Part shown: positions 26,117 through 64,000 of the stretch, one piece after another
Numbering within the stretch: the first letter of the stretch is position 1
How the letters are laid out: each line of letters begins with the position of its first letter
Assembly: GCA_976226885.1 (NCBI GenBank)
Contig: OZ320315.1
Coordinates: 18,662,001-18,726,000 of the forward strand
Direction: 5' to 3'
Source of the DNA: Iphione sp. A-MEVVRFRX5
Taxonomy: Eukaryota
DNA length: 64,000 nucleotides
The notes under the pieces: model-generated
Databases searched by the model: none
Seen by the model: only the letters and a program-made list of their open reading frames with translations
What the model was told of the DNA's origin: nothing
Position numbers and translations under genes: made by a program

Positions 26117-27871
26117 CTACCCCTGTTGTTGTGGTGATTGTGGAGCTGTCGTCTGCTGGACGGCAGGCTGTGTTTGCTGCGGTGGAGGTTGAGCGTTGGG
26201 TTGGTTCTCCTCAGCGGCAGGGTCGTTGAGTGGGAGATTCTCGCGAAGATCCATGAGGACTCGTCCATACCAGTTGTCCCCGGTCCAGGTCGTCGGGGAC
26301 GCTGTGTCCTGATGAGAGAATGGGAGTCCAGTCCCCCATTTTCTGTTGGTTGTAGCCCAGCCGATCCTTCTTCTGCCGGTCTGTCGAAGGCGTCGATGTG
26401 TGTTGATGTCGGATTGGAATCTGTGTTTGATGGCTGGTAGGAGAATTTTCTTTTCGAGGTTGTCATCGGGAACTGTCGTTCTCAGGATGTGGAGTTGTTG
26501 GAAGAGCTGCCTGTGGCTTTCGGGTCGGACAGCTTTGTTGACTACACCGTGCTGCTTTTTCTCAAGGGCGTAAGTGATCACCAAGTTTTGGAGCAGTGAC
26601 TGGAAATTGCCATGCATCATCATCAAATTATATGAGTGTTCAAGGGCAAAAGGGTGTTCAGGCCCTGCAAAGACGTATGTGTTCCTCGTCTCTATGGTTG
26701 CAAGAGTGGCTGGTCTGAGGAAGCGTGGCAACTCATTCCAATTTTGGTGATCATATTGAACATTGCCTAAATACAACGTGCAGTCCTTAATGTGTACACT
26801 GGAGAACTGGTCTGATTTACGTGCTATACGTGCTATGCGTTTAAGAATTTCGAGTCGGTCTTGATGCTCAGTGGGGAGGTCCTCTCTTATCCAGACCGTC
26901 TCCCTTCTATAGTCTTTTAACATAGAACGTCTGAACCAGACTTCATTTCTCTCTCTCAGGGAGCGAAATCGACCTATAGCCGCCCTATTTTTACCCCTAG
27001 GTGAACCAAGCCTGTGTGCTACATCTAGTTGCACGTGGGATAGGTTGAGGGCTTCCCCAAATAGACGTTCGAGCCGTTTTCTGGGAGCATCTGCTGTTTC
27101 CTCTCTATCCTCAGCTAAACCATCAAAGATAAGGTTTAAGCGCCTGTCATATTTCTCTTGTACCAGCACCAATTCTCTATGGACATCGACTCTTCTATTT
27201 AGGGTCTGAATTTCGCAGTTAGTACTGAAGATCTGACGGTCATGTTCATCTATGAACTCTTCACAAATTTCAATCTTGGCTTCACATTGAGCTAATGATG
27301 AGGAAACTTTATTAATACTTGCCGAGTGTTCAGTGGATTGCTGCCACAGTGCAGAAATCTTGGAGGTAATGGCCGCCATGTCGACGTCCATATCCTCGTA
27401 GTCCTGCTGGTTGTCTGTTTCGGTGTCCTGTTCATTCGTAGGTTGGGTCGGTATTTCCTCCACATCTTGATTCTGTTTGTTTTTTTTGGGCTTGACTGGA
27501 GTTTTGTCCTCGTTGTGGAAGTTGAGTGCCTTCTTGGCGTGTTGGTTGGTAGGCGTGTTGGGTGAGCTGGCTTGGTCACGGGTCCTTTTGAGCGTTTGGG
27601 ACTGGTGATCCATCGGTTCCTCAAATTCGTCTTCTTCTTCAATGTCATTGTAATGTCTTTCCTTCAACATCGAGTAGGCATGATCAGAAGGGTATTGTCT
27701 TCTGGAAACACTATGTCTTGGGGCAGGATCCCCTCTCGTTTGGCATGGAGAACGTAAGTTTCCAAGCATCTTGTCAGCACGTGTAGTCTCCTCTTGATGT
27801 ACGATCGAGCAGGGCAGAAGTGATGCAATATATCTCAATGCGCAGGCGTCGCCTGAAACCGGAAACGGCAC
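26117..27871 (-). CDS. LINE ORF1p (coiled coil, L1-type RRM/CTD) with C-terminal NADAR-like domain at about 26232-26680; likely ATG at 27769
   Basis: RLNLIFDGLAE, AHRLG, VWIREDLP, then FAGPEHPF...AIKHRFQSD...LRQTGRRRIGWATTNRKWGTG...WTGDNWYGRVLMDLRENL, matching the NADAR C-terminal consensus (AKF-QN, LL-TG, D-xWG-G, G-N-LG-xLM-xR). Confidence 0.85.
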   Translation of the reverse strand: MPFPVSGDACALRYIASLLPCSIVHQEETTRADKMLGNLRSPCQTRGDPAPRHSVSRRQYPSDHAYSMLKERHYNDIEEEDEFEEPMDHQSQTLKRTRDQASSPNTPTNQHAKKALNFHNEDKTPVKPKKNKQNQDVEEIPTQPTNEQDTETDNQQDYEDMDVDMAAITSKISALWQQSTEHSASINKVSSSLAQCEAKIEICEEFIDEHDRQIFSTNCEIQTLNRRVDVHRELVLVQEKYDRRLNLIFDGLAEDREETADAPRKRLERLFGEALNLSHVQLDVAHRLGSPRGKNRAAIGRFRSLRERNEVWFRRSMLKDYRRETVWIREDLPTEHQDRLEILKRIARIARKSDQFSSVHIKDCTLYLGNVQYDHQNWNELPRFLRPATLATIETRNTYVFAGPEHPFALEHSYNLMMMHGNFQSLLQNLVITYALEKKQHGVVNKAVRPESHRQLFQQLHILRTTVPDDNLEKKILLPAIKHRFQSDINTHRRLRQTGRRRIGWATTNRKWGTGLPFSHQDTASPTTWTGDNWYGRVLMDLRENLPLNDPAAEENQPNAQPPPQQTQPAVQQTTAPQSPQQQG

Positions 27872-30752
27872 CCCAGGTGCGAAGAAAGTCGACTGTAAAG
27901 TAGTGATTTTGCATCTTAAATTCTTGGTTCTCTGGCATAATTATGTTGGTTTCTAGTTCTTGAGCCTTTCTTGTTGAATCTCCCCATTTTGTATCGTCTT
28001 ACGTGTTGTGATGCCCGCTGAGGAGGTCCTTTTAATCAGCCAAGTTTTCGGGCTGCCATGGCAGTAGGAGGCCGGAACCGTAACCCCTAGTTCCCAAGAC
28101 TGCCACTGGGGCAGCACCCATACAAGGTCCTTTGGCACTGTGTGCATGAATGTGAGTAGGTGTGTATTCCCGGTCCCTGCACTACTCTGTGACAGGGAGG
28201 ACAAACGCTTGTTCTTCAGTATCCAAACTAACCCCCTTTCACTGATATTTAGCTGTAAAAAACAACCCCTTTCTCCATGAAAAATAGCAAGGGCTAATGG
28301 AAAAACACCACTTTCTCTGTGACGAGTCTAAGAACTGAGAAAACTAACCCTTTTTTATCAAGGATCAAGGACATACAAAGTTTATACCTGAATATGACCC
28401 CCTATTTTGGTGAAAAATGGAACTATCATGCGGTCCCTCTTCACCTTAAGTGCGGGGACCGGGTGGTTGTCTGAAGGATTATCGCCCAATGACAGTTATA
28501 ACAATCGAGGGCCGATAGGCCCCAGGCAGAGGGGCTTAGTCCTGCTTACATTCATCAGAAAATACACGTAACCTTCGTTCTAACAACGAAATTTTTATTT
28601 TTTTTTTTACCAATTTTAGCATGTAATGGAACTAAAATACTAAACTGCCGCCGGTCATTAGTCCCGAGACTAACGCCATCCTTTGGTACACGGTGCTCTA
28701 TCGGCGACGTCTGTCCCCAGAAGACGTCACGCCCAAATGTTAGAACAGAATGTTTTTTGATCCCAGAGACAGAGTAATCTCCCTTGCCATGTATTGTCAT
28801 CGAGCGTCAGAACAGTGGGCTCAAGGAAATATGTAATTTGATTGGTTAATAGGAAGGTCTCCAGGATAGAGCCATAAATTCCATTCTCTCTTCATGTGGA
28901 TTTGGGTCTCGAGACGCACGCCTGCAACATTCTGGGCGTGAAACCGGGGGCGTGAAACTTTACCAGAGCCAATGAAATCCATTCTCTCGTGGATACCTAT
29001 GTCACAGTATGTGCTGCTTGAGTCCACTGTCTATATAAAAGAGTATCACGGCTAGAGTGGTGGAACCTGTCGCCAGAGTCTACAGGGAGATCCACTGAAT
29101 CTTGTACCCAAACCAATATCTTCAAGAATTCGAGAACACCATATCCATAATGCTTGTAGAGGTAAGTTGACTTACTGTCCATTGAAACCGGCGAAGGATT
29201 ATCGACAGAAACAAGTTATATCATCTTTCCTCAGACAAGTTGTTTCTAGGTTTGACAGCCTCTTCTCTCTCAGTCTCTGCTGCATCTTAGGTAAGTTATC
29301 TGAACCTGAGGATATACTGTCATCGCCGTCAACATGAATGACTAGAATGTAAGCATTTTGAGAGTATGAGTGTGAGTAAGAATATAACTAAGAATAAGAG
29401 TGAGAACATGAGTGTCAGTAAGAACATGAAAAGAGCATAAATATGACTGAGAACATGAGTGTGAGTGAGAATATATTGGAGAGTATGAAGCTAGAGTGAG
29501 CCAGTGCAAAGGTGGGTAAAGAGAAAAACTGTCATAACTTGTCAACTATTGCACTTAGAAGGACATGACTTGAACCAAAATGCTACCAACCAAATGATAC
29601 AGGTGATAGAGGCAGCATCAGGTGACCTAGTCAAGAGGTGGGTAAAGAAATAAAACTGTGATAACTTAGAAACTATTGTACATAGAAGGATGGGACTTCA
29701 ACCAAAATGCTCCAGAGCAATGGACGCAGGTGATAGGGGATTGTCAGGATGACCCGGTGTATGCGCGTGGAAAGAGAAAAGCTACGATATCTTGGCAACT
29801 TTTAACTCACATGTACTATTTCAACATTATAGAGGAAGAATATGACCTCCATTTGCAGCCCTGGCTGCACCTGTACCTTGTTGATTGAAACTGCTGACAA
29901 ACTGGTTGAACTGCTATTACCACTACTATTGCAATATTGGTTGAAACTGCTGGACATTTTGGTGAAGTGCTTGTTTATGACTGACTATATTTCTCCTGCC
30001 AGGCTACATATTTGCTAAACTACTGGTGTATCACATTGACTTTGGTGACTCTGCCACACTGTATATACTACTGCTGTCAGAAGGGAGGTAGTCACCCCTT
30101 GTGTGCTGTTCTCCAATAAATATATTACAGTTTAAATGCACCAATCTACTGGCCTTTATATACACCTCCAAGAACTGAACATTTTGATATTCTATGAGAT
30201 ATAAGCTTATTCAGTTAAAAGAAGAAGGACTCAACACTGATAAGAGTATATTTATCCCTCACCTAGCCAATGCAAAATATCTCTGAAATACCGAATGTCA
30301 AGACTCAGTTCTTAATACATCAAGAAAGACTTCATTAGATGAGCCAGAAAGAAGACAACATCATTTTGACACCTGAAACAGGTAGATCTCATGAGATCAT
30401 TGGACAGGTAAAAGCCCAGCAAACACAAAACGTTTTCGCAACGTTGCCAGAATGTTGTGGTTTGGTTTGGTCTAGACATGACGTTTTCACGTTTCAGCAA
30501 CATTGAAAGAGTTAATTTTCCCCATGGATTGTTATAGCCCCCCCCTCCTGCATTATACTGGTGTTGAACATTTTTTTCATGCAGTCAATATTGATAAAAA
30601 ATAATTTCCTCAGATCGACTATACTTTTGGCCCTTTTCTGATGCTCTAATTGTGTTGGATAAACTGGAAAAACAATATGTGTCCTTCACTAAAATACACT
30701 GTGATTACTGACCATTTGACTGTACGGACATGCCTCTGGTTAGCTCCTGCAA

Positions 30753-32086
30753 TTGTTGGTTAACATGACACGATCAAAATCAAGAAAACGCAAAAACAGT
30801 GTGAATAATACACAAGGAGTATACATTAACCTGCGGAGTACCACGGGAAGTCGGAATTTCAGTATCTTAAGCAGCTCTGCATCGGAAAGCGAGGACATAT
30901 GTGAACTAGCGAGCGACGGTACAGGTGAGTCCGGGCAGGTCACTCAAACATCGCCACTAGCCAGCAGTGGTCAGGTAGTGACGCCCGGCAAGTCGGGAGA
31001 TTCTACTGGCATACCCGATACCCCACAGGGGCAAGACAAAAATGACTGTTCCTCAACACTAGTTCCCACTATGGATAATAAGGCACAAATTCTACAAGAG
31101 CTGAGAGAACTATGGAAAAAGTCCGATGATCAGTCCGCTAATCATGAGTCAATTATTGAACGGTTGGTCAATGACAATTTAAACTTAACGAATCTGCTCA
31201 GGGACATGATGGCAAGAGTAGCGAGTCTCGAAGATAGGGTTAAGGCACTAGAAGGTGGAGAGAAGGAAACAGAGAAGGGCCAGGAGGATGATACACAGAG
31301 GCAGTTGAGGGAGGAAGTATATGAAAGGAGGTGGAATCTGTTGTTTCGAGGGTCCCTGACCATGAAGAGGTGAACCTGAATGAGCTGATTACTGACATTA
31401 TTCTCATATTAGACCAGGAAATGTCTGAAGTTAATATCAACAATATCGAGAGACTGGGTCAATACAGGGAGGCCTACGAGCGTGCGGTGCTTGTTAGTTT
31501 CAATTCTGTTAAGGCAAGAAATCGTGTGTACAGTAAAAGATCCATGTTAAAAAACATTGATGAATATAATTACATATTTGTGCATGAGGATATCCCTAAG
31601 GCAGCCAAAGGGATATACCAAGACCTACAAGCTATCGCTGGTGAGGCGAGGAGAAGGGGATAACATGCAGGAGTGAGGGGACTGTCCCTCATTCTTGATG
31701 GTATCGCCTATGGCCATGAGAGCCTGGGTGATTTGCCGAATGGCCTATCGCTTGAGGAGGCAAACAAGCATGAAACAAATGAAGTGTATGCATTCAAGGG
31801 TGCACATTGCCCGCTATCAGGTGGTTACCATTGTAATCTGCTGCATGGTGGAAATAACTTCGCTTCGGTTGAACAAGCATTTCAATATACAAAGGCCATT
31901 GAGTGTAACGAACCAGAACTAACTGGGCAAATTCTGGAAGAGAGTTGTCCCTTTAGATTGAGACAATTAGGCAGCCGCGTGAATGTAACCAATGTTTTTT
32001 TGAGATGGAAAACTAGTGTACTGTTGATGCAGTGTGGTTGTATAGTCCTGAAGCTAACAAAAATGAATGATATGTTATGTAGGTAA
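30753..32086 (+). pseudogene. LINE ORF1p with NADAR-like domain (frameshift near 31350, stop at 31661-31663)
   Basis: RWNLLFRG, IERLG, VLVSF, FVHEDIP, then YAFKGAHCPLSGGY..FASVEQAFQYTKA..ILEESCPFRLRQLG (NADAR N-terminal SxEHxxQxxKA motif). Confidence 0.85.
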
Positions 32087-32088
32087 GA

Positions 32089-32709
32089 ATGCGGTTGAGT
32101 CTACGTTACATCTCAGACGAGAGGGGCTTCCAACCAGGACATAGCCTATATGCAAGACTAAACAATCTGCTGGACTGGGAGTCAATTCTGACAGTTGGTA
32201 CATCACTCCAAACAATCGTGGATCTCCTGGATGATATGGAAAATCAGGACTATCATGTGTCAATAGTGCATCTTGGTCTTCACTCACTAGTACGCTGTGA
32301 GGGTGGTATTGATCGTCTGCTGTACAATTCACGCTATGAACTGATACATGCGGTCTGGGGGCAACTGTCAACTCTATCAAATGTATTACATGTTCAGGGA
32401 CGCTCTGCACTACTGCTTGTACCAATATATGGGAAACTGTTGTTCCCTCTCTGTGCGTTTTGTCAATCTGAATTAAATTCTCAGGTGGAAATCATAAATG
32501 GGATGTATACTGAAATGAATAAACGGAATGGATTCTACACACCTGAGACAGCCTGGCCTATACATGAGAATCAAGGTGGCAGGTACATATTTCAATCAGA
32601 ACTGCTTGTTGACAATGTGTCATTCCTCATGTTCTGCAGAACTGGGAGGGTGAATTATCGGAGTTCATTGTACTACTTTCCTCTACTGAGGGTGTGTCTG
32701 GTTAACTAG
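32089..32709 (+). CDS. SGNH/GDSL esterase-like ORF between ORF1 and ORF2, 206 aa
   Basis: Block-like motifs YISDERG, VGTSLQ, IVHLGLHSL, INGMYTEMNKRNGFYTP, LLVDNVS; the catalytic Ser and His are not clearly retained. Confidence 0.6.
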   Translation: MRLSLRYISDERGFQPGHSLYARLNNLLDWESILTVGTSLQTIVDLLDDMENQDYHVSIVHLGLHSLVRCEGGIDRLLYNSRYELIHAVWGQLSTLSNVLHVQGRSALLLVPIYGKLLFPLCAFCQSELNSQVEIINGMYTEMNKRNGFYTPETAWPIHENQGGRYIFQSELLVDNVSFLMFCRTGRVNYRSSLYYFPLLRVCLVN

Positions 32710-33145
32710 ACTGACGTTCTATCATATATGCACGGGGAAGTGTTAGCACTTAATAATCATGATGAGATTGCTAAACGCTATGTGTATCTGTTGAATGTAC
32801 ATCGATGTGTCAGATGGTGTTGGTGTTGGTATTTGAACATTCCTGAACTCAAAGGCAATAAAATTGCTGGAACCGTTTTTTGGTATTTACTTGGTCCAGT
32901 TGCTATGTTGCATGATGTGATTGAAGTAAATGGTACTTAAGGCGATATTAGCCACATATAGTTAATATACGGTTGTTCTTAACCTGGACTTGAGAATCCA
33001 CTGCGTTCGTGTATCAATTAACTTAGCTTTGAGATTTTTTTTTTTATGAAGGTCTTTATCAGCACAGACCATTAAATTCTTTGTTACATATAGCTGTACG
33101 CATTAACTCTGTATACGATTAATTGGGAACAAATAGAGGTCCAAC

Positions 33146-35727
33146 ATGAAAGGTAGACAAATAATATTTTGGAATGCACGCTGTATTTTGTCGAAAATGG
33201 ATGAAATTAAGAATATTCTTAGAACCCGTAGGCCACTGGTATTAAGTATTAGCGAGACCTGGCTAACTGGTAATGTAGAGAACAACATACTTGAAATTAA
33301 GGGTTATCAAATCTTCAGACAGGACAGAGAGGGGCTTCTGAATAAGAACAGAGGAGGGGGGCTATTGGTATATGTGGACAACTCTGTGATGGTTGAAGAA
33401 CAAAAAGACATGAACATAGTACATGAAAGTGTAGATGGGATGTGGGTAAAAATACTGTGTAAGAATAGGAAACCAATGTATGTTGGATCGATTTATGCCC
33501 CTCCGAACGGAGATATTAATGTACTATCGACTCATCTGTCAAATAATGTATGCTTAGCTATGTGTAAAGGCCATCCTGACATTGTTGTGGGAGGAGACTT
33601 AAACACAAACTGGTCAAGCTCGGGCAAAAATAGGAAAATTCTACAATCGGTATTAGACAGATTCAAGCTTAGACAACTAATTAGTGAGCCCACCTTGATA
33701 CATAAAAGAAGCAAGTCTATCCTAGACCTAATCTGCACGAACATGAAGTATGTAAGTGAGTGTGGAACAATAGATATGCATGTAAGTGATCACTTGCTGG
33801 TCTACTTGGTGAATAAGAAGGAGAGGGAGAGAAACTTAGTAAGGGGATATCAAGGTAGATCGTGGAAGAACTATGACCACTGGGCCCTGAAGGATCGCCT
33901 GGAGGCAACAATCGATGCCTTAAAAGGGAACAAGGGTGTTGAGCCAGGGTCCAGATGGACTGAACTAGAGGATAACATTAGGGAAGCAGGTACGATCTTA
34001 TATCCTGAGGTTAAAAAAAGGAGAAAAGAAGATACAGACTTCAATAACCAATTGTATTGGTGCAACCTAAACAGACTTATCCATCGTGAACGTACCAGGT
34101 GTAGTGACATATGGCTAAGAGAGGGTGATGTTGTAGTGGAACAGAAGGAGTCCGCGACCTTGCTAAATGAATTTTTCGTGAAGCAAGCAGAAAGCCTGGC
34201 CAGGATGCTTGACCTTGACATGCCTAAGAGTGCTGCCACCTGGGATTTGGTAACAGTATCACAATCTGAAATGCTAGACATAGTCAGGAAAATAGATACA
34301 AGGAAACCGAGTGGTGTTGAGCGGATCCCTACCAGGCTGATGAAAGACTCACTAATATTGGCCATAGAGCCGCTGACTGAAATTATGAATGACATGATTG
34401 AGCAAGGTATAGTTCTGAATGACTGGAAAGTGGCGTGAATTGCACCAATCCATAAGAAAGGATCAAAACTGGAGAAGGGGAACTACCGTCCAGTGGCGAT
34501 ACTCCCTATAGTTGGGAAGTTAATGTAACGAGTTGTCCATAAGCAAGTATCAGAAGCTCTGGAATGGAGGGACTACTTTGCCAATGAGCAGCATGGCTTT
34601 CGTGCAGAACGGAGTACGCAGACAGCTGTGGCAAGTATGCTTAGGGACCTCTACACTGCAGAGGATGATGGTAAATATACTGCATGCATTTATTTTGATA
34701 TGTCAAAGGTGTTTGACGTCATGAACCACAAGTTGGTGCAAAAATGTCTGGTTGAGGCAGGAGCAGGTGAAATGTGTCTCCGATGCGTATAAAACTATCT
34801 GGATGGTAGGTGTCAATATGTCAGGTGCAATGGTCAAAAGTCAAAATGTCTCATGGTGCGACAGGGAGTACCGCAAGGGAGCCTAATGGGTCCCTTGATG
34901 TTCTCAATGGTGATCAACTCCCTCCCCAAATCACTGGCAATAACAAAAAGTATACTATATGCTGACTGTATACTGTGATGCCACAAGTGCTATGACCCTA
35001 CGACTTATGTTGCAGCGGTATTAGGGATGTTGAGAGTTGGGCTAATAGGCATGGCCTATGTTTAAATAAGGCAAAAACCCAGTACATGACCTTTGGGCAT
35101 GCAAGAGACTATGATCTGGATCTGAAACTAGATGGTGCAGGAATAACCAAGGTAGACAATTGTAATTTCTTGGTCTACAAGCTGGACAGTGCGCTAACCT
35201 GGAGACTGCTGATAGCAGAGGTAACCAAGAAAATCAGGCAACGAGCATTCAGTTTATCAAGGGTTAGTAGATCACTACCGTTTGATGCATGTGTAGAAGT
35301 ATTCAATGCTTTTGTAATGCCAGTTCTTGACTATGGTCTTTCATTGGTGATCAGTTCCAGTAAGATGCTACGGAACCAATTGCAGATAGCAGTCAACAGG
35401 GCCTTAAAGATGGTACTGGATGGTACAACCAGGTGTGAACAGTCTGCGCTGAAATTACGAAAATTAGCCAAAATGCAAATGGTGGAAGAGAGGGGTGAGC
35501 AACTTCTTGTCCTCCTAATTCATAAGCTACTTAGTCTTTCGAAGAAATCAGTAGTGCCTAACAGGACAAGAATGAGATGTAGCTCTCTGGGTGTAATGAA
35601 CAAGAAGAAACCAAACAAATCACTGTATTGTAAGTCATTCTGGCATAATGGCCAGATACTGTGGGACAAGCTGGAAATTCCCTGCAAGGTAAACCTAAGT
35701 GTGAAGGAATTGAGGAGATACCTCTAA
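33146..35727 (+). pseudogene. CR1-group LINE ORF2 (APE + RT), with stops
   Basis: WNARC, SISETWL, GDLN, ILDL, SDH, APIHKKG..NYRPVAILP, QHGFR, DMSKVFD, GVPQGSLMGPLMF, LYAD. Confidence 0.93.
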
Positions 35728-36490
35728 AGTGGAAGGTAGTTATGATGATGGGAAGAAATCACCGAGGTAATGTGAACCATCAGTGACAGATGCACTAGGC
35801 TATAATATATGGCTATGTGCTGCCTAGAGAGGTATTCGCTAAGATATTGGCAAATGTTGTTGTGGTGGGCCAATGTATGAAAGACAATCGCTAATTGGAA
35901 TGCTGGAAGTCACAATCAGCAATGTAGGCGTGCAGAATAGTTTGTACAGGACACTCTGCAACATCTTTTGTGCTGGTAAAAGTGAGTCCGGTAATAATCG
36001 CCTGACAGCGTGTTTGAACTGTACATAGGAGTAGTATATACGTTGATTCTACACCGCTCCGAATTACTATGAAATAAAGAGGGATTTCGAAATTTAGTGC
36101 TTGACTTCCGGTACAAACCGGAAGTTGTGGTGTCAAATTACTTAATGCTGATTGGTTGAGAAATTTAGGCCAAGGTCAAGGTCGTTATGTATGATCATGT
36201 GATCACAGACTTAATTTATCGTGATGATGTCATTTTTTCAAACGATACTCTGCACTAGTTTTATTTGGCGGAGGGATATAACTTTTTGTTATGTTGTTAG
36301 GTAATAGGTGTAATGATACATAATCGATGGACGGACTACTTTCAGGCGACATGTTGAAAAATTAATTAACCTAACTAAGCTAGCTATGAGGCCTCGATTT
36401 ATTTTATTATATTTAGAATGACAGGTTTATTTGTGGAACGATTGGGAATCGAACCCGTCATCTATAAGACCAGAATGAAGTGTTTATTTG

Positions 36491-36565
36491 TGGAACGATC
36501 CGGAATCGAACCTGCCATCTATAAGGCCAGATGCAAGTATCTTGCCAAGTGAGCTATCGAGGCCT
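36491..36565 (-). pseudogene. tRNA-like relic or SINE head, with a partial duplication at about 36425-36480
   Basis: ggcctcgatagctcacttggcaag...ggttcgattccggatcgttcca has A and B boxes, but the anticodon arm does not fold. Confidence 0.55.
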
Positions 36566-36786
36566 CAGTTAATTATAGTAAAAATAGGTATAGTGATTCT
36601 TTTGGTTCATTATTGCACCATTATAAAATGAAAAGCCAGACATGAATTTTATGATATGTAATTTTATTGAACAACAGCGGAATATGTTTGATGAACTCCT
36701 TGTCCTCTTACATCGATGTAATTTTATTGAACATATCGATAATTGTTTATGTACAGCAGCAGCAGAATATGTTTGATGAACTCCTC

Positions 36787-36975
36787 TTATATTGGAATTG
36801 TTTGACAGTCAGAACATATGAACATGTTGAAAGAATTGCCTGGGTGTTTACAGATATAGCATGTGTTGTGTGGATGATTTTGATTGTGTTGTTGCAGTTT
36901 TTGTATGCTCCATGTGTATAGATGACATGTGTTGTCATCACCATGTAATTTCTTTTTGTTGAAGAGTGGTGCCAT
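36787..36975 (-). CDS. Small CxxC-CxxC zinc-ribbon-like ORF (62 aa), probable Polinton accessory gene
   Basis: CYICKH...ICSDCQ; it starts 15 bp after the stop of the Pro-rich ORF. Confidence 0.4.
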   Translation of the reverse strand: MAPLFNKKKLHGDDNTCHLYTWSIQKLQQHNQNHPHNTCYICKHPGNSFNMFICSDCQTIPI

Positions 36976-36990
36976 GAATAGTGAGCTTCC

Positions 36991-40599: not shown

Positions 40600-40626
40600 A
40601 CAAAGCTCATAGCATGCATTCAAGGA

Positions 40627-54105: not shown

Positions 54106-55131
54106 ATGCCTGAAACGGTCCCAGACGTGAACTCCAAAGAAGGAAACGACCTGTTAATTATGATTATCGACAAAATCAAGTCGTTGGAGGAGAAAGTCGA
54201 TAGCATGAATCTACAGGAGGGGACAAGGAAAGGCAAGAAGACTCAAACGGTGTCGGCAGTTACCACGCGGGCTGCCGCTGCCAAAATGGCCGCTCAGTCC
54301 ACGCCATCCACCAGCGCCGGTGACCAGTCCACTCAACCAGCGTCTCAGACGATTCAGGACCAGGGCATCGACCAAACATCTGACGATCCTACTTCACAGG
54401 ATGCAAGCCCTCCACCTGCCCCACAGGTCCTTAAGGCTGAGGCAGCTGACCAGATTCAGAAAATCTTCACCCAGATGTACCCTGAAGCGTTGCAAAATAT
54501 AGGTAAGAAAATTGCCAGACCCCACCCCAGTTCCTATGTTGTGTCAGGCCAATCAGACAAGATTGATGTAAGAAAATTTAGCTTCCCTCAATATGTGTCT
54601 GCCATATGTTCAATGTTGCTTGACAAATCAATTGTATACCCAGCTGACCTGTTCACTCTCATAAAACATCTCAGGGATAGTGCTGAAGAGGTCCAAGCAA
54701 GCAGCTGGCCTCCTGTTAAAGACTGGGTGGTGGAGGTCTGGCAACTTACCTCCAACGACAGACTGTCCTGGGAAGATTCACAAAGAATAGAGACTATTAA
54801 GCAAAGGGCTATCAATGCTTACTCTCGTGCTAATACAGACTCTTCACCAACATCCAGAGACAATCCAGTCCCATGCCCCAAGTGGGCACAGGGAAAATGT
54901 ACTGAACCTTCAACTCATGCTGTTGCTGATTTCTATGTTTCACATATATGTCCATTTTGCCTAATTTTGCACAACAAGACCCTCGAGCACAAGCTCGACC
55001 AGTGTCGATCACGACGACGATCACTCCAGACGATACAAGGCCAGCCCACGCAGGACAGGACGATCAACAAGACGTGGAGCCACCCGCAGAAGGACCAGCG
55101 CCAGCAGAGGAACGACACCAACGACTGGTAG
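54106..55131 (+). CDS. Ngaro gag-like ORF1 with C-terminal Cys/His finger
   Basis: FSFPQYV, WPPVKDW, CPKWAQGKC..H..HICPFC..H..C. Confidence 0.85.
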   Translation: MPETVPDVNSKEGNDLLIMIIDKIKSLEEKVDSMNLQEGTRKGKKTQTVSAVTTRAAAAKMAAQSTPSTSAGDQSTQPASQTIQDQGIDQTSDDPTSQDASPPPAPQVLKAEAADQIQKIFTQMYPEALQNIGKKIARPHPSSYVVSGQSDKIDVRKFSFPQYVSAICSMLLDKSIVYPADLFTLIKHLRDSAEEVQASSWPPVKDWVVEVWQLTSNDRLSWEDSQRIETIKQRAINAYSRANTDSSPTSRDNPVPCPKWAQGKCTEPSTHAVADFYVSHICPFCLILHNKTLEHKLDQCRSRRRSLQTIQGQPTQDRTINKTWSHPQKDQRQQRNDTNDW

Positions 55132-56963
55132 ACAACCCCCGTCTGCCACAACTAACACACGATGAATATGCTGACGATATCACGATTTTTGAATGTGCTA
55201 ATAATATGTCACATTTCCAATGTACCAATAACAGATCCCATTACCAGATGCTGTCCCACCATGTTCTGTCTTGGCCGGACCCCTCAAGCACTTGTCCCCC
55301 TCAGTTGGCTCTAATTTACAGAGCAGTCAAAGCCTCTGGCCTCCCCAACTCTCTAGAGACTCGTCTTCCCCTCCCCACTCAGTTAAATTTACATGCATGG
55401 CACCAGGTCTTCTCCCCCAATAATACCAAATCTACCATTTTTCTAGATTTTTTAGAATTCGGCTTCCCCTTAGGATACGTTGCACAGACTCTCCCACAGC
55501 CTACTCCTGTTTATCCGATTTCCCCCACTGATGAACCACACATAGAAAAATACATATGTACAGAATTAGCTTGTGGCGCCATTACTGGTCCCCTTCCAGA
55601 ACATCCCTTCCCCACCTCTCCCATATTGAACCCCATAATGACACGACCCAAGAAAAATTCGAGCGATCGCAGAGTAATATTCGACCTGTCACATTCCAAA
55701 GTTAATATAGGTATTCCCCAAAATGATTATTTCACTGTTCCCATCAAAGTCCATCTCCCTACTCCATTTGTCATTGCTGACCTAATATCCTCAAATAAAC
55801 GAGACATCTACCTAGCATCCCTCGATCTTAAAAGAGCCTACAGGTACTTCAACGTGGACCCCCTGGATTGGCCATTATTAACATTTCAGTTCAAACAGGA
55901 TATATACATGGACCTATGCCTACCCTTTGGAACCCGCTACTCCTCCCTTTTACTCCAAGAAATTTCCCAGCATATCCTCCACTGTGTCCAATTAAAATTC
56001 CCCAACGTCCACACATGGCCCTACCTGGATGACTATATACTAGCGTCCACCTCCTTTGAAGAGCTAGATCAAGCCTTTCGTTTCCTGAAGCTATTAATAT
56101 CCTCCCTTGGTCTCCAATTAGCCCACGAGAAATCTCAACCCCCGACAACTTCCTTAGTATGGTTAGGTGTTAAATTCGACACCAGCGCCCGTACTATGTC
56201 CATTCCCAAAGAAAAAGTCTCAGAATTAATCCAAACATTAACCACTATCTCATCCCAGACCTCCATCCCACTAAAAAAGGCCCAGTCATTAGTAGGGCAC
56301 ATTAACCACATTGTAAAATGCGCTCCCCCAGCCAGATACTTCATCAATTCCCTATTGGACCAGATCAGAAAGGCCACAGCCTATTCCTCCAAAACCGTCC
56401 TCCTAACTCCGCAAGTTAAGAAGGACCTAAGATGGTATTACACCTTCCTCCCCTATTTCAATGGCCTAAGGCTCATTCCACCAGTTGAGATCAAAGAACA
56501 TATATATGCGGATGCATGCTTCTCAGGAATGGGTGCTTATAGTGCCCATTATTACTACTCACAGCCAGTTCCACCCTCTTTGACCCACCTCCCTATCAGC
56601 CAGTTGGAAGCCTTTAACACAGCAGTTGCCATTTACTTATTTACCTCCCACCACAACGCTAACTTCAGAATAGAAGTACATTGCGACAACCTGGCCACTG
56701 TGTATGTCCTATCGACTGGTAGGACTAGAGATGAATTCCTAGCCAAAATATTGAGGGCTGTATGGTATAGGGCCGCCAAGCTGAATATATCTCTCTTATT
56801 TACTCACCTTCCAGGCCACCAGATGTTAATCGCAGATGCCCTGTCCCGCGCTTCAGTAGCCCCCAAGTACAAGGCAATAATGGCCAAGTTCCTCCACGAC
56901 CATCCATTCCTTCAGCCCAAATCAGTTTCCTCATCCTTAGTAGCTCATATCAATTCCTTCTGA
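54948..56963 (+). CDS. Ngaro RT-RNase H ORF (overlaps gag)
   Basis: RRVIFDLS, LDLKRAYR, LPFGTR, YLDDYI, YADACFSG, ISQLEA, HCDNLATV, ADALSR. Confidence 0.93.
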   Translation: MSILPNFAQQDPRAQARPVSITTTITPDDTRPAHAGQDDQQDVEPPAEGPAPAEERHQRLVDNPRLPQLTHDEYADDITIFECANNMSHFQCTNNRSHYQMLSHHVLSWPDPSSTCPPQLALIYRAVKASGLPNSLETRLPLPTQLNLHAWHQVFSPNNTKSTIFLDFLEFGFPLGYVAQTLPQPTPVYPISPTDEPHIEKYICTELACGAITGPLPEHPFPTSPILNPIMTRPKKNSSDRRVIFDLSHSKVNIGIPQNDYFTVPIKVHLPTPFVIADLISSNKRDIYLASLDLKRAYRYFNVDPLDWPLLTFQFKQDIYMDLCLPFGTRYSSLLLQEISQHILHCVQLKFPNVHTWPYLDDYILASTSFEELDQAFRFLKLLISSLGLQLAHEKSQPPTTSLVWLGVKFDTSARTMSIPKEKVSELIQTLTTISSQTSIPLKKAQSLVGHINHIVKCAPPARYFINSLLDQIRKATAYSSKTVLLTPQVKKDLRWYYTFLPYFNGLRLIPPVEIKEHIYADACFSGMGAYSAHYYYSQPVPPSLTHLPISQLEAFNTAVAIYLFTSHHNANFRIEVHCDNLATVYVLSTGRTRDEFLAKILRAVWYRAAKLNISLLFTHLPGHQMLIADALSRASVAPKYKAIMAKFLHDHPFLQPKSVSSSLVAHINSF

Positions 56964-57053
56964 TTCATTACAGATCCCACACTCAACGCATGCTTCAATA
57001 GGGCGGTCAAACGTCAGTTCCAGGCTGTCACCCCCAAGACTCATAAGAGAAGA

Positions 57054-57959
57054 ATGTCCCAAGCAGCCCTAGGCATTGCATTCTGTCATCACTACGAATT
57101 CCCACTTGAAAATCTCCTACCACTTCATTTGCAGATATACATAGAATATCTGGTACAACTCAGCCTCACTCCAGCAGTAATAGCGCAATACATCTCCGCC
57201 CTAAGGTTCGTCTTCCAACAGGCCCAGTTAGATTTAACCGCCATTAATTCACCCCAGGTCAAGACAGCACTCAAAGCAGTCGCCACCTCCTCCCACCACG
57301 TACCGAAACCTAAGGCCCCAATTACCATTCAGATATTAACAAATATACTGAATTATTCCCTCCAGCTCGGCCCCCTAGGCATATGTCTCAGGGCCCTGTT
57401 CTCCTTTTTATATTTTTCCCTCCTGAGGCAGAATAACATCTGCTCAGACACCCCCCAAACCTTCAACCCTCAAAGGCAGGTCACTAGGGGGGACATTATA
57501 TTTAAATCAGAGGGAATCGAACTCACCCTCAAGTCTTCCAAAACCATTAAGAGGGCCTGTCCTCGAAAAATAACCATACCCCGCCTCTCCTGTCAGATCT
57601 GCCCCGTCACCCTCATAGAGCAAATGTTGCATCTAATCCCTACCCTACACCAAGAACAGCCACTGTTTGTGGATCCACTGCATAGGAATCCATTCTCTGC
57701 ATCTAGACTTACTAACGTCTTGAGGACAATTCTGTCGAATATGTCTTTGCCGGCTCACGAATATTCGCTTCATAGCTTTAGGAGGGGTGGGGCACAGCAA
57801 CTGCAGCTAGCAGATGCCTCCGAAATGCAGATCCTAGCCCAGGGAACATGGGCTTCATTGCCCAGTGCGCTTGTATATTCAAGTCGCGCCATAGCCAGCA
57901 GACAGGCTGCACAGAAGTTTAAACAGTATTTACAACCACTCCAGACAGGGTCTGCGTAA
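57054..57959 (+). CDS. Ngaro tyrosine recombinase (frame open from 56964)
   Basis: FSLLRQNN (R), KSSKT (K), YSLHSFRRGGA (HxxR), GTWAS (W), LVY (Y). Confidence 0.93.
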   Translation: MSQAALGIAFCHHYEFPLENLLPLHLQIYIEYLVQLSLTPAVIAQYISALRFVFQQAQLDLTAINSPQVKTALKAVATSSHHVPKPKAPITIQILTNILNYSLQLGPLGICLRALFSFLYFSLLRQNNICSDTPQTFNPQRQVTRGDIIFKSEGIELTLKSSKTIKRACPRKITIPRLSCQICPVTLIEQMLHLIPTLHQEQPLFVDPLHRNPFSASRLTNVLRTILSNMSLPAHEYSLHSFRRGGAQQLQLADASEMQILAQGTWASLPSALVYSSRAIASRQAAQKFKQYLQPLQTGSA

Positions 57960-60776
57960 CACCAATACTGGCATGGTATTATTATCTTTGTATATCCTTG
58001 TGCGCTTTCAGTCTCCAGAGACTATATGTTATGCTCAGTAATGCTATCTCAAGAGATATAGGTACCAAAGGGCATGGTCACCCTTATTTGTGAATAAACA
58101 TGTATGCCATTATATGCTATTCGTTTATTGTTTCCTGTATTATTCCTTAGTTAGGGTAGGGAGCGTTAAGAGCAATAGTAAAGCTATCTGGTGATCGCTA
58201 GGTATTGCATGAGCCTCCCACGCCCTCTGTTGTTTCGGCCGGGCATTGGCTATATATATAGCGACCCAGAGCTAATAATAGGCCAGTGTACGATTGTTGC
58301 TTGCTTGGTGTGCCTTTTACCATCCCTCCCTCCCCACACATTGTATTTTGCTAGCAATCTACATTAAGGTTAATGTTTGATGTGATACTTCTTACATACA
58401 TCGTTTCATGACTCGGTCTCAAGAGATTATCCTGTGTTCCTTGTAATATTTGAATTCTTCTGTTGTTTCATGTAACAGTCTCAAGAGACTTTGTGTATTA
58501 TTGTATTATTATCTTTGTATATCCTTGTGCGCTTTCAGTCTCCAGAGACTATATGTTATGCTCAGTAATGCTATCTCAAGAGATATAGGTACCAAAGGGC
58601 ATGGTCACCCTTATTTGTGAATAAACATGTATGCCATTATATGCTATTCGTTTATTGTTTCCTGTATTATTCCTTAGTTAGGGTAGGGAGCGTTAAGAGC
58701 AATACTTGCCTTTATTCAAAACTTAGCCACTGTCAGGTGGAGACAATCACCCCTCTGGTGTTGTCTCCAATAAAACTCCATATACATTTATTCAGTTGTT
58801 CCACCTCAGTCATATTTCATATACTTAATTGGCACAAAAGAAGTCCTTTTAAGAATATATCAAGACTAGTTTATATTATTATATCTACAAGAGCAAACTA
58901 TATATATGTGACTGATTCCACCAATAGATGTACTAAAATGTATTCTCCAGGATAGGGTTTTGGTGGTGTAAATTAAATTTCAATAAATATTTTACTTCTT
59001 TTTTGCTATGGCTTGGTCTAGGGGGTATGAGGAAGGTGGCACAATATTTTTAGCACTATAAAAGTATTTCTTCCTGTAGTTTTTAATAGTCCCAGAGAAT
59101 ACCGCTGGTACATCTATCGGTGGAATTAATCATATATATCTGTAAAATAAAAGGACACAGACTACAAAAACTACATCAAGGCTAATATAATAGCTACATA
59201 GTGCAGAGACTTTGAATATACATAAAAGACTGAGAGAAGGAAACCAGGAGCTCCCACATCGTTGATCCCAGGCAAGATCTGAGGACTCCCACTTACAAGG
59301 ACACTTCCCCTCAAGTAAGTCCCTCAGGGAGCCTTCAATCGTAAATTATCCCAAGTGGCCTGAATCTGATGGCCTAATCCAGGTGGCCCTTGTGAACTCG
59401 CCATCCATATAAAAATGTCATCATAAATGGATTTACAAGAAATATCAATGGCCCCCAGGTCTGTGTACGAGCTATAGTGCATCACCACACTCTATTGCCT
59501 ATCCCCTTCCCAGACATTACTAAGTCTGGAGGTGGATACTTTTACCGCTGGTGAAATATAGACACAAACATCTATTAATCTGACTATTGTGACACCTATC
59601 ACGCTCTGTGGCTGTCACAATATGGCAGAGGTACAAACTACACCTGTACCATCAAAAAACGTAGCGCCTGATGAGACCCAATCTGCTTAAAGCCGTTAAA
59701 GGGAAAAGACACTCAGGTGTCATGTGAATTTTGGACACACTGACTCTGCTGGACCTTTCAAGTGCAGGGTATGTGGCAATGTTTAAAATCATGACTATAT
59801 ACTTCATTGTCATGTATTAAAGAGACATTCTGCCTGGGTCTAATGCTATTCCAGGTATTGTGGCACATGAGGGTATCAATAGCAAAACCTTGATGCAAAT
59901 CAAGTCAGCAGAGCTGATGCCTAGCCAACAACCATCTAAGCAACCTGCCCAGACCACGAAAGCACCAGCAACCACCACCCAGGTGCCGTCCAAAGCCCCA
60001 ACTGAGACAGCCAATGTGACAACCAAACTAAGCCAAATTATGAACAGCCTTCTAAATGTAACTAGAGTCCGGATAAAGGTGATAGTGTGTCATTAGAAAA
60101 GGTGTTCTTAAAAGGGTGAATATTGTGTAGTGTACGGATAGAAATACTTGAAGTAAAGCCTTACTATGAAATACTTTAAGTGGTGAAAACAAATTTTTGT
60201 CTGGTAAATACTCATGTTCTTCGTATCAGTGTTAAGCAGAACTTGTCTTATAAAACAGTGCAAAGCCATTGTATTTCGTGTCGAGTCACTCTGTGAACAA
60301 CAAAAATGTTATCAGTGAGCCCTTACAAGGCCCTGGATGCCAGGCACTTGTGACAGCATGATATCTAAGTCACAATGACCTATTGTGAAGTTGACATGTA
60401 ATTAATGACTATGTCCAGTTGACGTGTGGCAACTGCATTGTCACTGTAGGCAAGTAGAGAATTTAAGAGAGTAGAACCGACACTCTTATCAGACTCGCCT
60501 TCCTGTTGCTGTGTAACACAGTTGCTAATAGGCGAACGTTGTAGTGGGACTGCTTATATGGGGGGTTCAGTAGTTAAAATAGGGATATGAGACTACTGTG
60601 TGTAAAGTTTCACTGCAAATAGGATGTGATTTTTCGTGAGCTCCATAGTTCTTCATATCAGCAGTAACGGTAATCGGACCTTATGGTCATTACGAGTCTA
60701 CTTGTTTCACACAGTGTCTTAGCATGTAAACAAGATAAGGAGTATTCTATCCCTAAGCCCAACCCTGGACACGAGG

Positions 60777-61034
60777 TGTTAGTGACGTCAATATCATGAA
60801 TGTTTAAAGACTCATTGTGTACGGATGTAAGTTGAACATCTGATTAATGACCACATCCGGTCCAGTCGAGTATATAAGGTTGGCGGTCTAACGTAGCTAG
60901 CTGGACTCGCCCCAGTTGCTGTTGAAGACACTGAAGCTGTATTGTTGCTGATGAAGAATAAAGGCTGACTTGAACCTGACTTGCGGTGTTGCAATTTGTG
61001 CTACACCCATCTCTTTTGGTGCCGTGACCAGGAT
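60777..61034 (+). mobile_element. 5' LTR (about 60777-61005) and tRNA-His primer-binding site (61017-61034) of a second LTR element
   Basis: TGTT...tatataag...aataaa...ctaca. The PBS tggtgccgtgaccaggat is complementary to the 3' end of animal tRNA-His. Confidence 0.75.
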
Positions 61035-61873
61035 CAGCTGAAAAGTAACAAGACTTCATGTGGGCAATCACGCAGCAAACCTTCGTAAGTGAGGTTGCAG
61101 AGGCTGCAAACCGGCACGTCGTGTATTCGTCGTACTTTGTCAGAGGACGGAGGCCGCTTCATTCGCGCTTCTGAGGATGACGAGGCTGACTGAGGGTCAT
61201 CACTGGCGTGCTGGGCTGACCCGCAGGATTGTTGTTCATTGTGCAAGAACAGCGACTACCACAATGTATCATCGAGTGGGATCTGTGGAGAGGGGTACGC
61301 CGTGTCAACGACGACCAACCCTTAGACCTGTCGGGCCTGTCGTTGAAGGAGCGACTCGAGAGGCAAAGGGAACTGCAGCTACTAAGGCAGAAAGAGCCGG
61401 TGGCATCCGAGGGCACAAGGTGAGTGTCCCCCGACCCCTGGTGGGGACGGTCGGCTATGTCAGCTACCAATAGGGAACTCGGAGGGCCAGGTTGCCTGCA
61501 GCTACCCCCTGCCGAGGTGGGCAGGATGCCAAGCCCACCCACGGACCTGCATCCCCAAGACCTGAGGTACGCCATCACGAAACGATGCAAGGCGAGGGCT
61601 GAGTCGGTCAACAAACAGATGCACCAGCTACTGCGGTCAATGCAGGATGGGGAAATCTCCCATCACGAGGCCCTTCTATGGTGGAATGTGGGTTGCGGGC
61701 AGGTGGTGAAGAAAGTGGTGGTGGCAGCTGGGCTGCAGCGACCTGGACAAGCAACGAGCGCATGAGACCCGATTGATCACAACCAACCATGAAGATGAAA
61801 GGTGAGCAGGGTTTCTGAACGTCCTCTGCCAAGATCTTGAGGGAAGGGACCTTAGAAGGTAGGGTCCCTTAAG

Positions 61874-62700
61874 ACGCAAAGATTGGATTTGACCACCTTA
61901 CAATTTGATTCCCGGTCCGTTGGGTATATCATTGTTATGCTCCTCATCGTGTCCATACTAATGGGGGCTTTAGGCTACCTAGCATGTAAATTGATCCCTG
62001 GATGTGGGACCTCTGAACTAGTGATAATGGGAATGGAGTCCTAGCCCTATGATCTACCTAGTTCCCAGTGAGATTCTCCCATGGCGGAATCCCAGGGTCC
62101 AGCTCCCATGGAGGTAGGACCCAATGTACAGCGTTGTTTTAGGGGAATAGATCAACATTTAGCCAAGGTAACCGAGAATTTGAGCAAACAAGGGGCAAAA
62201 CAGTCTGTTCCCAGTTTCGATGGGAAGCCAAAGAACTTCAAGCCCTGGATGAAAGCAGTTGAGCATGCAACTATAGGGTATATTGTACAGCCGGATGGTG
62301 AAGTATGCTTCAAGCAGCGTTTGGCCCAGTTAACAACTGAGGGTCCTGTGGCAGACTATTATCCGCTACATTGAGGAACAGGACAATCGGTTACGAGGAA
62401 ACGACCCCCAGATAATAGAGCCCGTGTTGACGGTGGTTGAATGGGAGTGGTTCACAGAGCAGTTATCACACCAGTTTGGGGAGGTGATAGATCTGGTCCA
62501 CGCAAAGGGACTATTGAGGAAGTGCAAACAATGCTCTGATGAAACAATTTATGTATACTCTGAGTGGTTGCTTGACTTGGCCCGAGACGCTTTTCACTGC
62601 AGAGAATGGCATTATGGCCGCCGTCGAGTAGAGACGTGTCCACGGGGGAGAGCGGTGCGGTTGTTATTTTATTGTTGTTACCACCCATGTATGACAACGT
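61874..62700 (+). pseudogene. Gypsy-like gag remnant with an in-frame upstream hydrophobic helix
   Basis: VPSFDGKPKNFKPWMKAVE, ETIYVYSEWLLDLA; upstream in frame GYIIVMLLIVSILMGALGYLAC across two stops. Confidence 0.6.
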
Positions 62701-62764
62701 AAATCCACCGAAGGTGAAAATAGTGACTTGCTATACACAGTAGGAGTACTAAAAGACAAAAACA

Positions 62765-64000
62765 ATGGGAAGGAAGCAGATTATTACCTCCAACAATGAT
62801 AAACCTCGCCAACGGACATCTGATCGTTTGAAATCGAGCCAGAGCAACGGGTCTGAGGGCCGGAGTGGTCCTAACAAACAAGGGTCACTAACTAGGACAG
62901 CCAGCCGGGACTCAACAACACAGCATATTAAGTCATTTTCAAATCCCTCTTGCTCTTCTACCTCTCCTAACAAATTTGCCATGCTTTCTGATGAAATGTC
63001 TAGTCAAGTTGCAGCTATCCTTAATGGAGACAATGACAATACCATCCATAGTGATACTAACACAGTAACTGACGACACTACAGTGGTTCTGACAAACTTG
63101 AATAATAGCATTGAGTCAGTACACACTACAGTAAATAATATGGTATTAAAGGAAGTCAGGGATCAACAAAACTCCCTCAAAAACGAAATAAAACTACTAA
63201 GAGGCGAAGTCAGTAACTCCAAGTCTATAATTGACGCCCTGAAGTATGAGAACATGCTGTTAAAAAGGGATGTGGACGAGTTGAAAGCTGACAAAATTAT
63301 CTATGAGGTGAGATCAAGGAGGAATAATATTGTACTAAGAGGGGCGAAGAGAATTCATCAAAATGAGAGTGACATTGATATTGTGGGAAGGCATCTGAAG
63401 GCTATTTCTCCCAAATACAACGAGGATATGATCAACAGTATTCGAAACATATCCCCCTAAGCATATGCTAACATTAGCACGTACATCATCAAATTTGTTG
63501 AAACCAGTGACAGGGATCACTTCTATAAGAACAGGGCGAATCTAAGCAAAACTGAGCACTACAGCGATATCTGGTTGAATGAGGATATTCCTAGCTGTGC
63601 ACAGAAAATATATTTTGATCTAAAAAAATTAGCTAAGCTAGCTATCAGCTGAGGCCACAAAGCCACTGCATATGGTCTGTACATCATTATAGACGGAAAA
63701 AAGCTCAGTTTTCAAGAACTACATTTGATTCCTAAAGGCATTACACTCGAAAATGCACATTCAGTAGCAACAAAGAGCCATTACTATTTCGAAGAACGGG
63801 GTCACCCGCTAGCAACAGATTATGTAATGCCCTTCAAGCACAACGAGAACACTGTTGCAACGGTTGAGCAGGCCCTCACACTTGACATTGCGAAAGTGGG
63901 GAAGAGAGACGATTTGAAAAAACATATTCTTGAAACAACTGACTCACAGAAATTGAAGGAGATCCAAATCACCATCAAGAAATCTCTACCAAAAGAGATT
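62765..64000 (+). pseudogene. Third LINE-type ORF1p with NADAR-like domain from about 63780, cut by the window end
   Basis: Coiled coil, RRNNIVLRGAK, YIIKF, IWLNEDIP, IIIDGKK, then YYFEERGHPLATDYVMPFKHNENTVATVEQALTLDIAK..ILETTDSQKLK; two in-frame stops. Confidence 0.75.

Follow-up and report, generated by a model that had tools for sequence, protein, structure and literature searches.

Three long interspersed nuclear elements (LINEs) in a 64 000-nucleotide stretch of the genome of Iphione sp. A-MEVVRFRX5 (contig OZ320315.1, positions 18,662,001 to 18,726,000; this whole stretch is called the window) encode first open reading frame (ORF1) proteins with a NADAR-fold domain at the C-terminus. 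LINE ORF1 proteins are generally regarded as RNA chaperones, and the one accessory domain of ORF1 with an enzymatic function that is known to us is an esterase. What is new here is that the NADAR domain is found in three states and on two backbones in one window: an apparent conserved pseudo-enzyme in an L1/Tx1-type element (copy 1), a truncated copy with canonical residues in a three-ORF CR1-like element (copy 2) and, in that three-ORF family too, a further degenerate lineage (copy 3). The explanation retained, with moderate confidence and on the basis of residues and predicted structures, is that these are ORF1-NADAR proteins of LINEs in which the domain would be an N-glycosidic ADP-ribosyl hydrolase in the canonical lineages and non-catalytic in the degenerate ones. 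Coordinates of all features are given in Table 1.

The frame of copy 1 (26117-27871, minus strand) was open throughout, with an ATG at 27769 and the stop codon at 26117-26119. Its product matched Pfam NADAR (PF08719) with 33.1 bits and an E value of 8e-8, slightly below the 35.1-bit cut-off. The NCBIfam riboflavin N-glycosidase model gave a weak match, and Pfam Transposase_22 gave no match to copy 1 up to an E value of 1. The profile of the copy 1 family (alignment A1) matched the NADAR of Phytophthora nicotianae (8bau, E 1.5e-24) and YbiA of Escherichia coli (2b3w, E 1.7e-15); its N-terminal part matched the human L1 ORF1 protein (ORF1p; 2ykp/2yko, E 6e-6), and 2ldy was also matched (E 7e-5). 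The AlphaFold model of residues 230-584 had a mean pLDDT of 92.8. When this model was searched with Foldseek, the best match was the human L1 ORF1p trimer 2yko (E 9e-7, 164 columns); 8bau with ADP-ribose was matched with an E value of 3e-6 and a TM-score of 0.63 (by target), and YbiA 2b3w with a TM-score of 0.64. From these profile and Foldseek matches, the modelled copy 1 protein is an L1-type ORF1p, made of a coiled coil, an RNA recognition motif (RRM) and a C-terminal domain (CTD), to which a C-terminal NADAR-fold domain has been added. Its kinship with L1 ORF1p was visible solely at profile and fold level. The type II ORF1p of human and mouse L1 (2yko, 2ykp and 2ldy) has the same RRM and CTD core and upstream coiled coil, whereas the ORF1 proteins described here, with about 19% identity to it, add a NADAR fold of about 160 amino acids after the CTD. 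Relatives of copy 1 were common in the genome: 114 were scored among 2987 candidates, with 33-100% identity, and most were free of stops.

The state of the active site was read at four reference positions, E43, K50, W89 and E125, numbered as in the P. nicotianae NADAR (PMC11543638) and transferred through a host-like NADAR of this genome (L053) onto 97 aligned domains. In the P. nicotianae protein, the catalytic residues E43 and E125 grip the distal ribose, the essential K50 binds the phosphates, and W89, R93 and W133 touch the pyrophosphate (Schuller et al., PMC11543638). Elements of the L1/Tx1 group are called type A and those of the three-ORF family type B. The canonical LINE copies had the motifs LSN, SxEQ...K, LxEAS, WGxG and WxGxN and kept E43, K50, W89 and E125. 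Among the public LINE NADARs (n = 59), E43, W89 and E125 were found in 59/59, and position 50 was R in 36 and K in 21. Type B domains of this genome (n = 12) had E43, K50 and W89 in 12/12 and E125 in 11/12. The type A domains of this genome (n = 23, copy 1 included) had L, T or I at position 43 and Y, L, F or M at position 50, W89 was deleted and E125 was replaced by W in 23/23; in copy 1 itself the replacements were E43 to L, K50 to Y and E125 to W, again with W89 deleted. In the copy 3 group (n = 2), position 43 was E or N, position 50 was I, W89 was deleted and position 125 was Y. Copy 3 kept E43 and had I instead of K50; past the window end, its W89 was deleted and its E125 was Y. The set of catalytic and ADP-ribose-binding residues was absent from copies 1 and 3 and, judged by these residues, only the copy 2 lineage looks like an enzyme within the window. 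The net charge of the NADAR domain did not separate the dead groups from the canonical ones.

Copies 2 and 3 were decayed, and each piece of a broken ORF was searched separately. Copy 2 (30753-32086, plus strand) was split by two frameshifts. About 260 nt had been deleted from it, which took away the C-terminal half of its NADAR and joined it to the next ORF. The remaining fragment matched positions 32-90 of the Pfam profile (E 8.9e-4, 20 bits) and retained E43 and K50 (SVEQAFQYTKA). In L039, the nearest relative of copy 2, the NADAR was complete, the second glutamate (E125) was present and all four site residues were kept. For copy 3, the 9 kb of the contig that follow the window (labelled L038) were included. 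Its ORF1 ended 222 nt past the window end, and the complete NADAR piece (L038:1153-1722) scored 36.2 bits with Pfam, above the 35.1 cut-off.

Loss of the site was not accompanied by relaxed constraint. Between copy 1 and L002, its closest relative (94% amino acid identity), 3.7, 3.4 and 32.4% of codon positions 1, 2 and 3, respectively, differed. In type A, Nei-Gojobori omega (dN/dS) lay at 0.03-0.07 in the NADAR and at 0.02-0.04 in the RRM-CTD part, values obtained from only three pairs with unsaturated synonymous sites. The dead NADAR is as constrained as the RNA-binding core, and this reading is conservative because neutral decay after insertion raises omega. Taken together, loss of the site in 23/23 sampled domains and strong purifying selection point to a conserved pseudo-enzyme in the copy 1 lineage. 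Selective retention of ORF1 at the copy 1 locus is not claimed: at the rate seen in ORF2, about 2.3 ORF1 disruptions were expected (P about 0.1, own estimate).

These data bear on the idea that the NADAR is a purely structural or binding lobe in all lineages, contacting nucleic acid or a partner, and that the catalytic residues of some families are a leftover. The type A and copy 3 groups fit it, as they are intact and constrained without the site. This idea was nevertheless judged unlikely, since the near-complete retention of E43, W89 and E125 in the public and type B sequences is seen at about 25% shared identity, and a leftover would not be held for so long.

The NADAR-domain tree was rooted on the host-like gene. 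Type A of this genome formed one group (SH-aLRT 88) inside a clade (96) of otherwise catalytically intact public LINE NADARs, and the two intact public NADARs of this clade that were checked sit in L1/Tx1-type elements. As the dead type A clade is nested among intact LINE NADARs, the active-site loss is therefore secondary. Type B NADARs formed a separate clade (95) with two public sequences. The copy 3 group was placed beside type A (SH-aLRT 94) on a branch of 2.8 substitutions per site, and BLAST of its RRM-CTD and NADAR parts showed no special affinity to type A. A module swap between copy 3 and type A is not claimed, given possible long-branch attraction and the absent BLAST affinity.

The same ORF1 module was found on both backbones. 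The motif order common to the three copies was coiled coil, RxN(L)xxxG RRM, (W/F)xxEDxP, (L/I)xG and NADAR; across 80 aligned sequences of relatives, no variation was seen at the N of RxN, the D of ED, one P and one W. An alignment of 368 residues (26% identity, E 3e-17) paired the ORF1 of copy 1 collinearly with that of a type B element (L050); it started at the end of the coiled coil and included the NADAR, and the whole ORF1 module is therefore common to both backbones. The copies are old as well as divergent. The closest genomic relatives of copies 2 and 3 had about 70% DNA identity. A preliminary description, made from the letters of the window, had proposed three collinear ORF1-like genes with a coiled coil, an RRM and a C-terminal NADAR-like domain, too divergent to be recent duplicates and belonging to two LINE clades, with the third ORF2 outside the window. 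The frames and alignments bore out the genes, their motif order and their divergence; Pfam, the family profile and AlphaFold/Foldseek agreed on the NADAR domains, and profile and fold showed the N-terminal parts to be of the L1 type. The two clades were recovered as an L1/Tx1-type element 1 and CR1-like elements 2 and 3 with an SGNH ORF.

One frameshift and several in-frame stops interrupted the ORF2 of element 1. Its pieces matched Exo_endo_phos, RVT_1 and zf-RVT (26.9 bits against a cut-off of 27.5), and its reverse transcriptase (RT) piece matched human L1 ORF2p with an E value of 5.6e-60, compared with 1e-22 for R2. In the intact type A relatives L042 and L043, ORF2 had 1261-1264 amino acids and matched human L1 ORF2p with an E value of 1.4e-89; L042 scored 29.7 bits with zf-RVT and 40.3 bits with Pfam NADAR. 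Element 1 is in the L1/Tx1 group, a name that here spans both Tx1 and L1 proper.

Type B elements had another layout: an ORF1 of 500-710 amino acids ending in NADAR (94-101 bits with Pfam in the intact ones), a separate ORF of 220-255 amino acids and an ORF2 of about 950-975 amino acids. This ORF2 contained Exo_endo_phos_2 and RVT_1 and was devoid of the zinc knuckle (zf-RVT); L1 ORF2p similarity was not detectable in it, and only R2 was matched (1e-13). In an all-against-all BLAST of ORF2 proteins, scores were 150-1140 bits within groups and at most 95 bits between groups. The ORF2s of the relatives of copy 2 (L039) and of copy 3 fell into the three-ORF group, apart from the L1-type, and the ORF2 of copy 3 itself, found beyond the window end, was of the CR1-like type.

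The middle ORF of element 2 aligned with those of 14 related elements, with the motifs SDSxG, GxND and DGxH in common. The model of a relative's middle ORF had a pLDDT of 90.2 and matched GDSL lipases and sialate O-acetylesterases in Foldseek (E 3e-7 to 1e-5). The middle ORFs of this genome's copies had no Pfam match; that of a public relative matched Lipase_GDSL_2 weakly. As modelled, the middle ORF has an SGNH fold, together with the block I, III and V motifs. The name CR1-like is reasonable for elements 2 and 3, because an esterase is a known accessory domain of CR1/L2-type LINEs; it is taken from domain content, RT motifs and the esterase, and not from a reference RT phylogeny. ORF1 proteins of CR1/L2-type LINEs with an SGNH esterase domain were reportedly described by Kapitonov and Jurka in 2003, and zebrafish ZfL2-1 is an example. 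Elements 2 and 3 have in common with such LINEs the SGNH-fold esterase and an ORF2 with Exo_endo_phos_2 and RVT_1 and without a zinc knuckle. They differ from such LINEs as generally described in that an independent ORF of 220-255 amino acids, located after an L1-like ORF1-NADAR, encodes the esterase, making three ORFs in all.

The junction between ORF1 and the SGNH ORF varied within the three-ORF family. In young type B elements (L050:2516-2545 and L049:2560-2589), ORF1 ends with TAG and the ATG of the SGNH ORF lies 12 nt on, in the same frame. This layout allows termination-reinitiation, or stop-codon readthrough to an ORF1-NADAR-SGNH fusion. In other three-ORF subfamilies, ORF1 and the SGNH ORF overlap by 7-38 nt. 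One subfamily (L044, L051, L052 and L055) has a long, charged, low-complexity linker between RRM and NADAR. Its SGNH ORF has SDGRG and DGxR/K, so that the serine of block I and the histidine of block V appear lost, and it may be a pseudo-esterase lineage.

The fusion was abundant. A Pfam NADAR search of the 1.18-Gb genome gave at least 150 scored matches from 4416 candidates, all of which passed the cut-off (93-176 bits); most were in open frames the size of ORF1, 450-710 amino acids long. A word-indexed protein search with residues 230-584 of copy 1 returned nothing; when 1.84 billion cluster representatives were then searched exhaustively with HMMER, 1419 matched, 454 of them at E ≤ 1e-10, and nearly all of these 1419 covered both RRM and NADAR. 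In the nearest public clusters, Annelida was the commonest recorded phylum (Atlas; only 1-3 records). One public contig (L013) carried a NADAR-ORF1 followed by Exo_endo_phos/RVT_1/zf-RVT, and two others (L059 and L060) a NADAR-ORF1, then a GDSL-like ORF, then Exo_endo_phos_2/RVT_1. Chance or an annotation artefact was rejected as an origin of the fusion, which is collinear in hundreds of intact frames of this genome and in independent public contigs.

Two further arrangements of NADAR domains were observed. A stand-alone NADAR at C22:27636416-27636865 (L053:3276-4262, minus strand) lies in an open frame of 329 amino acids, scores 174 bits and has the full catalytic residues; it is probably the host's own gene. 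In the public proteins P0051 (1075 amino acids; ENA contig L017:1734-4961) and P0070 (870 amino acids), the query was matched in five and four separate stretches, respectively, and these proteins appear to carry tandem NADAR domains.

Abundance also bears on the possibility that the domain is a YbiA-like metabolic N-glycosidase, clearing intermediates of the riboflavin pathway, and a chance passenger with no role in retrotransposition. YbiA (2b3w) is indeed a structural and sequence relative, and the weak NCBIfam match points the same way. The long duration of the fusion to an RNA-binding protein, its thousands of copies in two LINE groups and the presence of a separate host-like NADAR gene speak against such a passenger, which we regard as most improbable.

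A full-text literature search found one earlier mention of the ORF1-NADAR fusion, in a paper on Ectocarpus transposable elements (PMC12477816, Genome Biol 2025). That paper describes NADAR in Gypsy Pol and adds, in one sentence and without analysis, that the ORF1 of several Crassostrea gigas Tx1 families (Repbase) appear to carry a YbiA-family NADAR. The preliminary description had named no characterization of the fusion. Nobody has characterized it, but it was already recorded, and the fusion counts only weakly as a catalogued standard ORF1 type. The C. gigas Tx1 elements, compared here through their published description, are like copy 1 and the public contig L013 in being L1/Tx1-type LINEs with an ORF1 NADAR. 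New with respect to them are the loss of the site in the copy 1 lineage and the same module in a CR1-like family. The Ectocarpus Gypsy elements are likewise retrotransposons that acquired a YbiA-family NADAR (PMC12477816); however, they are long terminal repeat (LTR) elements with an N-terminal NADAR in Pol, apparently of recent bacterial origin, whereas the domain described here is at the C-terminus of a LINE ORF1 and old in animals. Fold and motifs are those of the NADAR hydrolases (8bau, YbiA 2b3w, DarG1 antitoxins and phage T4 NADAR), but, whereas the known ones are mostly free-standing single domains (PMC11543638), those described here form part of an RNA-binding protein of a retrotransposon. 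Caenorhabditis elegans SNA-3, an SL1 small nuclear ribonucleoprotein (snRNP) factor with three NADARs (PMC9303266), is also a case of an animal NADAR in a ribonucleoprotein, one of its domains being without the conserved catalytic residues; unlike the elements described here, SNA-3 is encoded by a nematode-specific host gene and is not mobile.

The proposed function can be set out as follows. One ORF1 module sits in two unrelated LINE backbones, the L1/Tx1-type of copy 1 and the three-ORF CR1-like type of copies 2 and 3. In this module the coiled coil would ensure trimerization and the RRM and CTD would bind RNA, the NADAR fold being added C-terminally. In the lineages with E43, K50, W89 and E125, that of copy 2 included, the NADAR most likely functions as an N-glycosidic ADP-ribosyl hydrolase. 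Through RNA binding, ORF1p may tether this hydrolase to LINE RNA or cDNA, where guanine or cytosine bases would be freed of ADP-ribose. In the copy 1 lineage, the whole ADP-ribose site has been swapped for conserved hydrophobic residues in a fold under strong purifying selection; in this lineage and in that of copy 3, the domain probably has a structural or binding role in the ORF1p particle and no catalytic one. The preliminary description had suggested a possible counter-defence or ADP-ribose-sensing role for the fusion as a whole. Copies 1 and 3 do not have the residues for binding and cleaving ADP-ribose, and a hydrolase role is limited to the copy 2 lineage and the other canonical families; the dN/dS check that it had called for revealed the strong purifying selection reported above.

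Substrates of characterized NADARs are consistent with action on bases. NADARs hydrolyse ADP-ribose linked to guanine (N2) in single-stranded DNA (PMC11543638) and to guanine on RNA (PMC11833690), and they also act on cytidine-linked ADP-ribose (PMC12945103). Alternatively, the NADAR could work in RNA-end processing, acting on NAD caps or ADP-ribose phosphate by-products of the LINE transcript and not on base marks set by the host. This was proposed for the NADARs of transposable elements in the Ectocarpus paper (PMC12477816), and the NADAR family was first predicted in RNA processing involving NAD or ADP-ribose; the snRNP context of the SNA-3 NADARs (PMC9303266) and RNA binding by ORF1p agree with it. 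Tested NADARs were, however, inactive on 5′- and 3′-phosphate-linked ADP-ribose in both RNA and DNA (PMC11833690), and this activity has been shown for no NADAR; RNA-end processing is thus doubtful.

Still less probable is a counter-defence against PARP-type ADP-ribosylation at intermediates of target-primed reverse transcription, a link drawn in the preliminary description by analogy with viral macrodomains. ADP-ribose hydrolases of selfish elements are established, among them viral macrodomains and phage NADARs (PMC11825919). The link to PARPs is weakened by the specificity of NADARs, which spare ADP-ribose on phosphate ends (PMC11833690) and do not remove the uracil-linked ADP-ribose made by PARP10 (PMC13036486). 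In addition, NADAR activity on protein ADP-ribosylation is not reported, and copies 1 and 3 are without the site.

Four points weigh against hydrolysis in the canonical lineages or against parts of the argument for it. Hydrolysis is dispensable for some elements, as two independent lineages dropped the site yet thrive. DarT, Enterotoxin_a and ADPrib_exo_Tox models found no homologue in the genome, a weak negative as control genomes were also silent and CARP-1/pierisin queries were not run. The small number of pairs behind omega and the basis of the CR1-like label, both given above, are the other two. The first two points also count against a counter-defence role. The sole ARTC-type ADP-ribosyltransferase found was at C22:19330202-19330666 (L058; Pfam ART PF01129, 67 bits). 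Bivalves are the main source of guanine transferases of the CARP-1 type, with further occurrences in Cnidaria, Porifera and other Bilateria (PMC12945103).

Such long maintenance of NADAR, in two LINE backbones and in copies that number thousands, suggests that retrotransposons engage with the ADP-ribose chemistry of nucleic acids in a way not yet described. Nucleic-acid ADP-ribosylation is known mainly from bacterial toxin-antitoxin systems, phage conflicts and the toxins of clams and butterflies. We raise as a tentative suggestion that invertebrate LINEs could bring along, as part of the ORF1p coat, an eraser of their own for base-linked ADP-ribose. If so, hosts or microbes would use ADP-ribosylation of G or C, by CARP-1/pierisin-like or other transferases, to restrict retrotransposons, and the repeated conversion to pseudo-enzymes would mark a shift from erasing this mark to another use of the fold. 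One genome offers a natural contrast, with intact sites in three-ORF elements and a rebuilt, strongly conserved site in L1/Tx1 elements. The significance is tempered by the earlier appearance of the fusion in print and by a function deduced from sequence.

Table 1. Features of the three elements in the window (positions are those of the window).
Feature	Position	Strand	Basis or state
Element 1 ORF1 (copy 1)	26117..27769	minus	Uninterrupted frame; coiled coil, RRM, CTD, C-terminal putative pseudo-NADAR
Copy 1 RRM and CTD, homologue of the L1 ORF1p core	26720..27184	minus	Family profile and Foldseek
Copy 1 NADAR-fold domain, active site replaced	26231..26713	minus	Pfam, profile, fold, site residues, omega
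Element 1 ORF2, L1/Tx1-type (apurinic endonuclease (APE), RT, zf-RVT/CCHC)	22138..26029	minus	Pfam pieces; RT compared with L1 ORF2p
Element 2 ORF1 (copy 2)	30753..32083	plus	Three frames: 30753-31373, 31331-31663, 31664-32083
Copy 2 NADAR remnant, N-terminal half	31775..31995	plus	Pfam; alignment to relative L039
Element 2 middle ORF, decayed, SGNH/GDSL-fold esterase-like	32083..32706	plus	Alignment with related middle ORFs
Element 2 ORF2, CR1-like APE-RT, RT decayed	33137..35724	plus	Exo_endo_phos_2; RT grouping of relative L039
Element 3 ORF1 (copy 3)	62765..64000	plus	In-frame stops 63458-63460 and 63650-63652; extends beyond the window
Copy 3 NADAR, N-terminal part	63776..64000	plus	Interrupted by the window end

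Other repeats flanked the three elements. A further RT-like ORF set with the motifs LPKIHK and GRPVIS (20502-21821, minus strand) adjoins the 3′ side of element 1; from these motifs, we take it to resemble Penelope-like elements. Immediately after the ORF2 of element 3, past the window end, comes a Gypsy-like LTR retrotransposon (L038:6374-9000) with CCHC gag, protease, RT/RNase H and integrase. Downstream of element 2, at 36400-36560, two tandem stretches with GGAATCGAACC...CATCTATAAG resemble reverse-complemented tRNA-derived sequence, of the kind found in short interspersed nuclear elements (SINE-like).

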